The position numbers and the translations under genes are program-made. The notes under the pieces were generated by a model that was not told the origin of the DNA, did no database searches, and saw only the letters and a list, made by a program, of their open reading frames with translations. Below are positions 6,657-9,600 of a DNA stretch of 64,000 nt, in pieces. This DNA comes from Eutreptiella sp. 'Long Island Sound 2002'. Lineage: Eukaryota > Protista > Euglenida. Location of the stretch: contig OZ038378.1 of the NCBI GenBank assembly GCA_964036045.1, positions 157,728,001 to 157,792,000 of the forward strand. Direction: 5' to 3'. Positions within the stretch are counted from its first letter, which is position 1. Each line of letters starts with the position of its first letter.

Positions 6657-9600
6657 GTGTCGTGAATGCGAGCGCCGCACACTTCGCAGCCAGGGGCTAA
6701 GTGGGGGGGGGGTGAGGGGGCAGCGACCCGACGCAACATGCGAAGGGAAGAACGGGTGACCGTCCAGGGCCCCGTAAAGAAACAACAACCAGACGGAATG
6801 TCACACGGGGGGTGAGGGGGCACCTGGATGGGAATCTCAGCAAGGGTAGGTGAGTGACAACTCCTCAACCCCCTCCCTCTCTTGCAATCCCACCACTTTG
6901 CCGGCAGGGCACGTCTTTGTTTGCCTGATGCTGGCCGTCACACCCGCATATGCGGCCATCGGAAAAGCGTCCTCTCATGGCTGCGCCGTGTGCTGACAGG
7001 TGCCCGCAGGGTTGTCCGCAAAGCGTGCTGAGGAGCGCGCCACCGGCCGCTTTGGGACGGGCGGATCCGGTTTTTTGCGCGCGTGCGCCGCGCGCATGCC
7101 CTGGTATCGGCGGACCGGGTATTGCTTGCGCGCGCCACCTGCCGCCTTGGGACGCCCGTTTGTGTGGTGCATGCTGCCAACTGGGAGGAGTGCGAAGTGG
7201 TCCGTGCGTATCCGACGACCCAACAGCGCCAAGGCAAGGGGGAACAAGGGTTTTTGAACCCTGGGAGAGCGCCTATTCTTCCACCGGCCCACTTCACCCC
7301 AGATGTTTATGAGGAGGGGGGTCTGGGTGGGTGCCTCAAATCTGGGTCCTTTGATGCCCGAGGTCCCCGATGTGCTGGAGGCGGTGTGTGGGGTTGTCCT
7401 GAAGGCATCGTGAGGGGCTGTCAGCAGGGACGCTTCAGAGCCAAGGTGAAAAGATGGGCTCGAGGGGATGTCCGGGGGGTGGTCTGTTGAGCTTTCCTGG
7501 TCCAGATTGGCCACCAGCGTCAGATCAGAGAGCTGGGTCCTACTGAATGCAGCTGGTTCCTACCAAGTCTCGGGTGCGACAGGAGCGGATATTACTGAGT
7601 GGCACGTGACACGGGGCGGATTCCTGCCGAGACGCAGTTCCCCTGCCAGTGCCGCCTCTCGTGCATGAGGCGGTGCTGGAGGCAGTAGGTGCGGAGGTCT
7701 CACAGGCGGTGTGCGAGTATGTTCTGGAGGCCAGCAGTCTGCAGGGACGCCTTGAGCCCAATGCGACGGGGCGTCCTTGAGGTTGTGTGCGGGGCTCCGT
7801 TTTGATGCCATTTGCAGGGCTGTCCCGCAGGCGGTGTGTGGGACCTCCCGCGGGTGGAGCGCGGGGATGGCCTGGGGTAGTGCGGGATGTCTGTGAGGCG
7901 CCGTTTCGGGGTCCGGCGTTGGTGGCGCTGTTGTGCGGGCGGTGCGTGGGGGTGCCCCGGCGGTGCGGGTACACCCTCAACAAACCCCCGCCAGGCCATG
8001 GCAGCCCTCGCCATTCCTCTTCGCACACAGGGCGGCCTAGGGCTCCCGGAGGGGGAGGCGGGGCTGGAGCTCGTCCGACTGCTCTTCGCCTTCTGCACGA
8101 TCTGGTCCGTCGGCGGCAACATCGACGTGCGGTCGCAGGAGAAGTTCGACAGCTACGCCCGGGACGCGCTGGAGCGGGTGGCCTTGTTCCCCGCGTTCGG
8201 GCTGGTCTATGACTTCCAGATGGACCTCCACCACCGCAAGTTCGTTCCGTGGCAGCAGAGCATCCCGACGTTCCGTTACGACCCGAAAGTGCCGTTTTCG
8301 CAGATTGTGGTGTGTGTGGCCTCGCCCCCCCCTCCCCCCCCCGTGACGTTTCTGGGCTCTCCCTCTTGCGTTGCGGGTCTCGGCATCGAGGGCTTGGTTT
8401 GCACTCCGCTGGCGAACAGTTGGGCGATAGACGGTTACCTGAACGGTGACCTGAAGCTGCTGTTTCGTCTCTTTGGGGGGGCTGTTGAATGTTTGTTGTG
8501 ACATATCAAACTCTGTGTCTCAACGGAAGGGGGGTAACTTCCAGCGCCGGAGTGGAGCTCAAGCCCCATGGGCCGGCCGACCTCCCACGGTCTTGCAATG
8601 GGGTTTGGTTGAGGAGTCCCTGTGGGGGACGAAAGCACGGATCTTCGGTGTGAGGATTTCGTGCCCAGCAACTTTGTGGTGTCCACCAACACAAAGGAAG
8701 CGGTGCTGCATTGCCCTCTGACGTTGTGTGTTGTGTCCCGGAGACCAGATTGTTGGCCTATCCAATGCACAATGCTGAGGTTCTGCCTTCCTTGTGAGCA
8801 AGTGGGGGGGCTCCTTGCGGTTGACTTCACACTTCAGTCGCATCAATCCTTGACTTTTTGAAAGCAACGGACGTCAACCCCATTGAAGGGCCCCGGAACA
8901 GCCAGTGAGCTGCACACGCCACACACCCGGACGGACCCCTTCAATTGATGCAACAGAAGCTTGAACAAGGCCAAACCTCTTCACTGAGAGGGATCCGCAA
9001 CGAGGTCCATCGTGTTCCGGGGGCGTACGAGTTCCCTAAGACTTCCCCGTACCAAAGCGGAGACTGCCATGCCTGCCCTTGTCGCATGTCGTCTCCCTTC
9101 TCACCGTTTGTCCCGTCGGTTCTGCATTGCTTCTGCCCCCTTGCAACGGCACCAAACCAACTGGTGCCTAAGCACCGTCAAGCACCAACAGAGCAGGGGA
9201 AACCAGTGCATCGCGCCGGTCGTTGACGTCAGCACATTCCCCTCAGCCCCCAGCCCTCAGGGAGGCTTCCGCTGCTGTTGACAACAACACAAAAACACGC
9301 CTATCTCGGAACTGACGCCACACCACAAAGGGCGAACGGCCCCCGGCGCCCCAGCCCCCCACACCGCCCAGGGTGCCTGCCATGCCCTAGTCCACTGTCA
9401 TGTGGAGGGTCAGCGGAAGGGTCTGCACGGAGGAGCGCAGCTGGAGCAGGGACACGGGGGCATGAAGGTACACATATCTGCGGTGCGATGGCTGCGGAGT
9501 GAGCGCGAGGGTTAGTAGTGAGAAGAGGGGGAGGGGGGGTGAAGGCAATGGAGGGGACACAAAACGTGAATACCAGCAATGTGGTTTGCGATTCTGGTTG

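Follow-up and report, generated by a model that had tools for sequence, protein, structure and literature searches.

Chlamys elements, a type of Penelope-like element described in green algae, show an insertion preference for (CA)n and (C)n, and their target duplications are therefore often indiscernible (Craig et al. 2021, PMC8557442). Non-autonomous Chlamys elements exist, for example, MRC1 of Chlamydomonas, and usually resemble the 3′ end of their partner; GIY-YIG, CxC and DKG-type motifs are diagnostic features of the Penelope-like elements with an N-terminal nuclease, and variable duplication length in Penelope-like elements has been ascribed to a variable distance between the first- and second-strand cuts (PMC8557442). 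Here, we describe a repeat family, R2, in a 64,000-nt stretch of the genome of the euglenid Eutreptiella sp. 'Long Island Sound 2002' (assembly GCA_964036045.1, contig OZ038378.1, positions 157,728,001–157,792,000, forward strand; the whole stretch is referred to as the window), starting from a truncated copy at 6723–6806. We consider it probable that R2 represents the 3′ portion of an abundant retroelement, at least 3.1 kb long and apparently non-coding where read, which inserts into (G)n/(C)n by target-primed reverse transcription using enzymes that are likely Penelope-like.

The first-pass annotation of the window had described the copy at 6723–6806 as a truncated R2 sequence flanked by a 16-bp repeat, and this layout stands. 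In the entire window, the 16-mer GGGGGGTGAGGGGGCA has just two exact matches, 6707–6722 and 6807–6822, with an 84-bp R2 fragment in between, and the interval 6700–6825 can be written as GT-G10-TGAGGGGGCA, 84 bp and G6-TGAGGGGGCA-CCTGG. The site comprises three features:

6703–6722, + strand: upstream target copy, G10 (6703–6712) followed by TGAGGGGGCA; it contains the exact 16-bp repeat (6707–6722) and is unmodified, with the full G-run kept.
6723–6806, + strand: 5′-truncated R2 copy of 84 bp, ending ...GGAATGTCACAC and corresponding to approximately the last 85 nt of a family of at least 3.1 kb.
6807–6822, + strand: downstream duplication copy, in which G6 (6807–6812) is element tail, target or both and TGAGGGGGCA (6813–6822) is unambiguous duplication.

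BLAST against longer natural copies identified the 84-bp insert as the 3′ end of the R2 family (96–98% identity). These alignments begin at 6720–6722 because the repeat closes with GCA, the same bases that the element carries ahead of the truncation point, and the 5′ join therefore displays 1–3 nt of microhomology. The G-run is 10 G long to the left of the insert and six G long to the right. Since the R2 3′ terminus itself carries ~5 G, the target duplication at this site is 10 bp (TGAGGGGGCA) to 16 bp long, the origin of the six Gs from RNA or from target being indistinguishable. The insertion lies ~40–60 nt inside the intron behind a dynein-like exon (6402–6664), as read directly from the sequence.

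Searches of the 2.28-Gb assembly, for which candidate sites were counted and a subset of 40 matches was scored, returned at least 1,912 candidate sites for a 377-bp query from the R2 3′ part, with the 40 scored matches at 95–100% identity. For the junction analysis, we used 61 copies with both junctions readable, drawn from the window and from genomic loci (named L followed by a number). All 61 possess the same 3′ end, ...ATGTCACAC (CACAC), mostly followed by A and then by either an intact G-run or a G-rich one with interruptions; at least four uninterrupted G are present in 55 copies (mode 5–6), and the run is broken by substitution in the remaining six. Poly-A is absent from every copy. The 5′ ends are staggered, giving copy lengths between 85 bp and more than 3.1 kb, and the longest natural copy (L079, 3,114 bp) extends beyond the edge of its locus. 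The most upstream 364 bp of L079 are found in 40 other genomic places at 98–100% identity and returned 281 candidates, compared with ~1,900–2,500 for the 3′ part; this gradient (281 against ~2,000) is the expected outcome of 5′ truncation. The fixed 3′ end, variable 5′ truncation and lack of poly-A reported in the first-pass annotation were thus recovered across the 61 copies, but its description of R2 as SINE-like (resembling a short interspersed nuclear element) fails, as every apparent 5′ end is a truncation. A short SINE (less than ~600 bp) with a discrete 5′ end was rejected, the copies being shortened forms of an element that measures 3.1 kb or more. Unit lengths of 746, 921, ~1,600 and 2,750 bp were likewise rejected, each being the truncation point of the reference copy used.

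Pfam searches of the open reading frames (ORFs) in the 3.1 kb of R2 revealed no domains, and this sequence displayed no similarity to Penelope-like proteins of the same genome. A tblastn search of all loci examined, using five related proteins and the protein of PLE-A, a coding Penelope-like family in the same window, detected no remnants near R2. Judging from its sequence, R2 would belong to a long element, of which it forms the 3′ part; this element either is non-autonomous or carries an ORF upstream of the 3.1 kb. Within the long element, ~420 bp are duplicated in tandem, the two units being 81% identical (L081, 482–875 and 896–1316).

Target duplications were assessed by aligning the 100 nt upstream of the 5′ junction locally to the 45 nt downstream of the 3′ end, with a cut-off score of at least 32. 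This score was reached by 10 of the 61 copies, while permuted flank pairs, which retain their G-runs, averaged 0.75 such copies and never exceeded 2. The clear duplications range from 10 to ~90 bp (L023, ~90 bp; L075, ~80 bp; L080, 34 bp; L009, 30 bp; window 62662–62691/62868–62898, ~30 bp; L010, 25 bp; L078, 21 bp; the copy at 6723–6806, 16 bp). In all clear cases, the downstream copy of the duplication begins 0–6 nt (mostly 0–3) past CACAC, i.e. at the G-run, as the first-pass annotation had proposed, and in most cases, the upstream copy terminates at the element boundary. Together with the fixed 3′ end and the 5′ truncation, duplications above chance uphold the earlier suggestion that R2 inserts by target-primed reverse transcription. 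Enrichment at G/C runs, which had been flagged for checking, was also found: a G-run of at least five lies within 6 nt of the R2 5′ junction in 38/61 copies compared with 3.8% of random window positions, an enrichment of ~16-fold. In most of the copies without a clear duplication, a G-run adjoins the truncated 5′ end, and the duplication, if any, therefore falls inside the homopolymer. Long 3′ G-runs tend to be paired with long upstream runs (L034, 16 and 15 G; L013, 13 and 11 G; L020, 18 and 14 G).

As runs of 10 or more G or C abound in the window (75 in 64 kb), the 16-bp repeat at 6707–6822 might be a chance match of G-rich low-complexity sequence rather than a target duplication. We regard this as highly implausible, since the match is exact, including the non-G bases TGA...CA, and is placed precisely at both element boundaries; dinucleotide-preserving shuffles yielded 0.32 matches to GGGGGGTGAGGGGGCA with two mismatches allowed, and the same architecture recurs in the 10 copies above, against the 0.75 expected.

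The state of the target before insertion could be approximated from a ~195-bp tandem satellite (L041, L056, L061, L062, L065, L069, L070 and L072), each uninserted unit of which carries a single run of G10–14 before TCTCCCAAGGGATTGG. This run is a recurrent insertion hotspot, with ~6 of 30 PLE-A 3′ junctions and one R2 copy located exactly within it. At these insertions, the 3′ end of the element is followed by GGGG(G) and TCTCCCAA, and in L061, the upstream flank retains G13-TCT before the element. The presence of the run in uninserted units indicates that it pre-exists at the target; the upstream copy remains intact, and the downstream junction usually carries only the minimal G-tail of the family. 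Uninserted satellite units, with one G-run plus TCTCCCAA, would thus represent, by proxy only, the single-copy empty site expected for a duplicated sequence. Untemplated addition of G at the 5′ junctions was considered and rejected, because the run pre-exists in the uninserted units and lies upstream of X in duplications of the form G+X.

Some insertions are found in or beside older copies. In L010, a 746-bp R2 copy is located inside the G-run flanking an older truncated copy, and its 25-bp duplication takes in the run plus 17 nt from the start of the older copy. New targets are therefore created by insertion itself, which explains the head-to-tail arrays observed in L008, L010, L035 and L037. 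Inverted pairs are present in L018 and L021. In L021 (1501–2720), an inverted segment (reference ~1893–2547) adjoins a direct segment (2547–3114) with a common breakpoint at ~2547, an arrangement that appears to be of the twin-priming type; L018 is similar. Re-insertion into flanking G-runs together with twin priming can also explain the R2 tandems and inverted pairs.

The window contains six R2 copies including the one at 6723–6806, all on the + strand and all sharing ...GGAATGTCACAC. The other five are as follows:

4265–4936, + strand: R2 copy of 672 bp; 5′ flank G14+CGATGTTGT (4242–4264), 3′ flank AGCGGGGGGATGTTGT (4937–4952), G-led duplication of ~15 bp.
16519–16858, + strand: R2 copy of 340 bp; G-rich 3′ flank AAGGGGGCGG..., 5′ junction without a G-run or clear duplication.
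26970–27198, + strand: R2 copy of 229 bp; G14 directly 3′ (27199–27212), 5′ junction indistinct.
32718–32934, + strand: R2 copy of 217 bp; G14 (32702–32715) adjoins the 5′ end and G6 follows the 3′ end.
62692–62866, + strand: R2 copy of 175 bp; G-led duplication of ~30 bp (62662–62691 and 62868–62898), the two differing by a 2-nt indel.

Near the fourth of these, GGGGGGTCTAG is present at 32567–32577 and again at 32935–32945, directly after the R2 copy. If this is a duplication, the insert would be a composite of ~120 bp of non-R2 sequence, G14 and the 217 bp of R2, possibly formed by a template switch; alternatively, the 11-mer match may be due to chance.

A GIY-YIG Penelope-like element had been proposed as the source of the R2 enzymes, and PLE-A, in the same window, displays a matching G-run terminus and matching junctions, although its GIY-YIG match is weak:

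29069–32529, + strand: PLE-A, an autonomous-looking Penelope-like element; ORF 29069–32287 (1072 amino acids), 3′ end ...CCCAGAGTTCCTTC at 32523, followed by G6 (32524–32529).

PLE-A is a young family, with at least 2,130 candidate matches to its 3′ region in the genome and scored matches 99–100% identical. In 30 of 30 copies examined, ...CCCAGAGTTCCTTC is followed by a G-run, one of them interrupted (GAGGGG); uninterrupted runs are never shorter than 4 G, the length found in 10 of the 30. A G-run of at least five adjoins the truncated 5′ end in 12 of 19 copies, compared with 3.8% of random positions, and G-led duplications were identified as GGGGTCTGGG (L057), GGGGGGGTGCAA (L052) and a sequence of ~20 bp (L044).

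The protein features suggest that PLE-A is likely a Penelope-like element with an N-terminal nuclease. The GIY-YIG match covers residues 197–276 (profile positions 4–74 of 78, E value 0.004–0.03, below the Pfam curated cut-off) and was the sole result of a PDB profile search, Pfam and a PDB sequence search. The alignment consensus ...TTRPxCFCxPxHL... contains a CxC/CFC motif, and A524-D525-K526 (A-D-K(S)) is invariant, both read by eye and not scored; motifs A and B resembling those of reverse transcriptases (RTs) are visible in the alignment with paralogues down to 45% identity. In language-model features, PLE-A resembles Penelope-type clusters; the nearest, from rotifers and green plants, carry HTH_animal and RVT_1 (score 0.94–0.97). 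An exhaustive profile search returned 1,131 relatives, of which the 150 listed are close fragments. Motif C of the RT (window 31511–31522) reads QFRDN, with Q, F, R and N invariant in the paralogues down to 45% identity; given this invariance and the 99–100% identity of family copies, the motif looks conserved rather than decayed. In L047, a PLE-A copy adjoins TTTCTGAGTGTCTATTTTTTTCG, which is the Euglena spliced-leader sequence (PMC5654406, PMC6242988) minus one T; an Rfam search of this locus returned nothing relevant.

When folded as RNA, the 3′ ends of R2 and PLE-A had z-scores close to 0 and thus no structure in common. As the source of the R2 enzymes, we consider most likely a Penelope-like element of the kind represented by PLE-A, with GIY-YIG at the N-terminus; this view is drawn from the junction signature and not from common sequence. 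Our comparison covers one coding family, and PLE-A itself is a candidate for mobilization of R2 in trans. An element outside the Penelope group, for example, a long interspersed nuclear element (LINE) with an apurinic/apyrimidinic (AP)-type or restriction-like endonuclease targeting G/C runs, could instead move R2 or include it as its 3′ part, in which case the likeness to PLE-A would be convergent. LINEs typically show 5′ truncation, duplications, microhomology at the junction and twin-priming inversions, and R2 and PLE-A have no sequence in common. Nevertheless, no G-tailed LINE was found among the loci examined, PLE-A has the same terminus, satellite hotspot and duplication pattern, and the wide spread of duplication lengths, very short to very long, agrees with the nicking behaviour that PMC8557442 cites for GIY-YIG; we therefore consider a LINE origin distinctly unlikely.

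Our analysis revealed that R2 has pre-existing G/C-run targets, a fixed G-terminated 3′ end, a variable second cut and 5′ truncation with microhomology. Insertion would begin with a nick in the C-rich strand, within the run or at its edge. Complementary DNA synthesis would then start from the exposed C-ended 3′-OH, probably aided by pairing with the ~5 terminal Gs of the RNA, and frequent early stops of reverse transcription would give rise to 5′ truncation. Cutting of the second strand at a variable downstream distance (0 to ~90 nt) would follow, and the duplication would hence always start with the G-run and vary in extent. The copy at 6723–6806 is probably the product of one such event, with a duplication of 10–16 bp and 1–3 nt of microhomology. 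Long downstream runs paired with long upstream runs fit nicks made deeper in the run.

Targeting could also be set wholly by the nuclease, for instance, through a CxC domain that recognizes (G)n/(C)n, cleavage falling at the run's downstream edge and the 3′ Gs being copied from a G4–5 tail on the RNA with no pairing to the C-tract. The duplication at 6723–6806 would then be the 10-bp TGAGGGGGCA rather than 16 bp. The tail has a hard, family-specific minimum (R2, 5 G; PLE-A, 4 G), and nearly all satellite insertions keep exactly GGGG before TCTCCCAA and the full G13 upstream, as this alternative would predict; the CxC domain, moreover, may direct the nuclease to repeats according to Craig et al. 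(PMC8557442). On the other hand, 3′ runs of 8–16 G exist and tend to accompany long upstream runs, suggesting partial duplication of the target run, and a templated G-tail facing a C-tract would pair anyway. Taken together, we view targeting by the nuclease without any pairing as possible, though not probable.

Several observations weigh against target-primed insertion of R2 into C-tracts with Penelope-like enzymes, or limit how far it can be taken. Approximately 30% of R2 copies lack an evident G-run or duplication at the 5′ junction. Sequence data do not separate pairing of the G-tail with the C-tract from pure nuclease specificity, and the minimal 4–5 G retained on the 3′ side of many insertions would equally be expected if the nick fell right at the run's edge. 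A search of the assembly with 6300–7200 matched only R2 sequences, with neither an empty allele nor a paralogue of the insertion site. R2 is known only for its 3′ 3.1 kb and may itself be autonomous; its 3′ end shares only the G-run with that of PLE-A, unlike published non-autonomous Chlamys elements, which usually resemble their partners. Regarding PLE-A, the RT found no match in Pfam or in a PDB sequence search, and AlphaFold2 run on a six-sequence alignment yielded an unusable model (predicted local distance difference test score 36.7).

G/C homopolymers are abundant throughout the window, where the 75 runs of at least 10 nt compare with 0.7 expected (~1.2 per kb, ~100× expectation) and are divided 37 to 38 between the strands. 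On the + strand, six of 52 G-runs of at least 8 are located at R2 junctions. Clustering of the sequence upstream of window G-runs placed 10 of 102 in clusters, although the sample is small. Genome-wide searches with four random other runs identified one as the 3′ end of another abundant G-tailed repeat, whose 40 scored matches all stop at the run, and one as unique; the remaining two lie in repeats with an ambiguous relation to the run. At least three families end in G-runs. The sequence at 51666–51786 (− strand) belongs to an abundant repeat with at least 1,900 candidates, for which 40/40 scored matches end exactly at the G-run and many start ~120 bp upstream; this may be a third G-tailed family. 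At 33349–33399, C15 and G10 surround a 26-nt spacer and could form a long G/C hairpin; another abundant repeat ends here.

It is conceivable that G-tailed Penelope-type elements, by priming on C-tracts via a templated G4–5 tail and leaving G-runs on both sides as new targets, are amplified in such a way that they become a main driver of the homopolymer load and not a mere consequence of it. We hold this to be doubtful; long runs pre-exist at the targets, and new 3′-side runs are usually only 5–6 G.

The six R2 copies (4265–62866) and PLE-A (29069–32529) all lie on the + strand, which is the sense strand of the dynein-like exon. On the premise that the whole window is one + strand gene, this bias has a two-sided P value of ~0.016. 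Target orientation alone was rejected as its cause, given the balance between G- and C-runs of at least 10 (37 and 38).

Our literature search returned no paper relevantly pairing Euglena with Penelope-like elements. Penelope-like elements go unmentioned in the Euglena gracilis genome paper, which assigns a third of the genome to unclassified repeats (PMC11252322), for the annotation of which G-tailed families of this kind would be of value. As far as the searchable literature shows, the present data place this class of element in a euglenozoan. Dozens of clean junctions display both strand cuts relative to the run, whereas in green algae, the duplications are mostly indiscernible, and such readable junctions make the question of annealing versus nuclease specificity testable.

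Some lineages of non-long terminal repeat (non-LTR) elements target microsatellites, for example, (TAA)n, (AC)n or (TC)n, and the 3′ end of their RNA carries the matching repeat, permitting annealing-assisted priming. R2 differs from these in that the target is a mononucleotide G/C run and in that no LINE-type protein is associated with it. L1 and Alu resemble R2 in having a homopolymer tail complementary to the nicked strand (poly-A on a T-tract), as well as 5′ truncation, duplications, microhomology and twin-priming inversions. In R2, however, the tail is a short templated G-run rather than post-transcriptional poly-A, the target is a C-tract, the duplication lengths are far wider and the nuclease is probably of the GIY-YIG type, not AP-type.

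A (C)n bias and non-autonomous partners have already been published for Chlamys-type elements, and the case of R2 and PLE-A matches these in kind. Both systems exhibit heavy 5′ truncation, head-to-tail and inverted arrangements and a preference for (C)n; the excess of non-coding derivatives over the coding element and the protein order GIY-YIG, CxC, DKG-like and RT of the Chlamys elements are probably shared as well. The present system is distinguished by motif C of the PLE-A RT, which is FRDN in place of the usual two aspartates, by its euglenozoan host (Euglena has no mention in PMC8557442) and by duplications that are readable and visibly start in the homopolymer.

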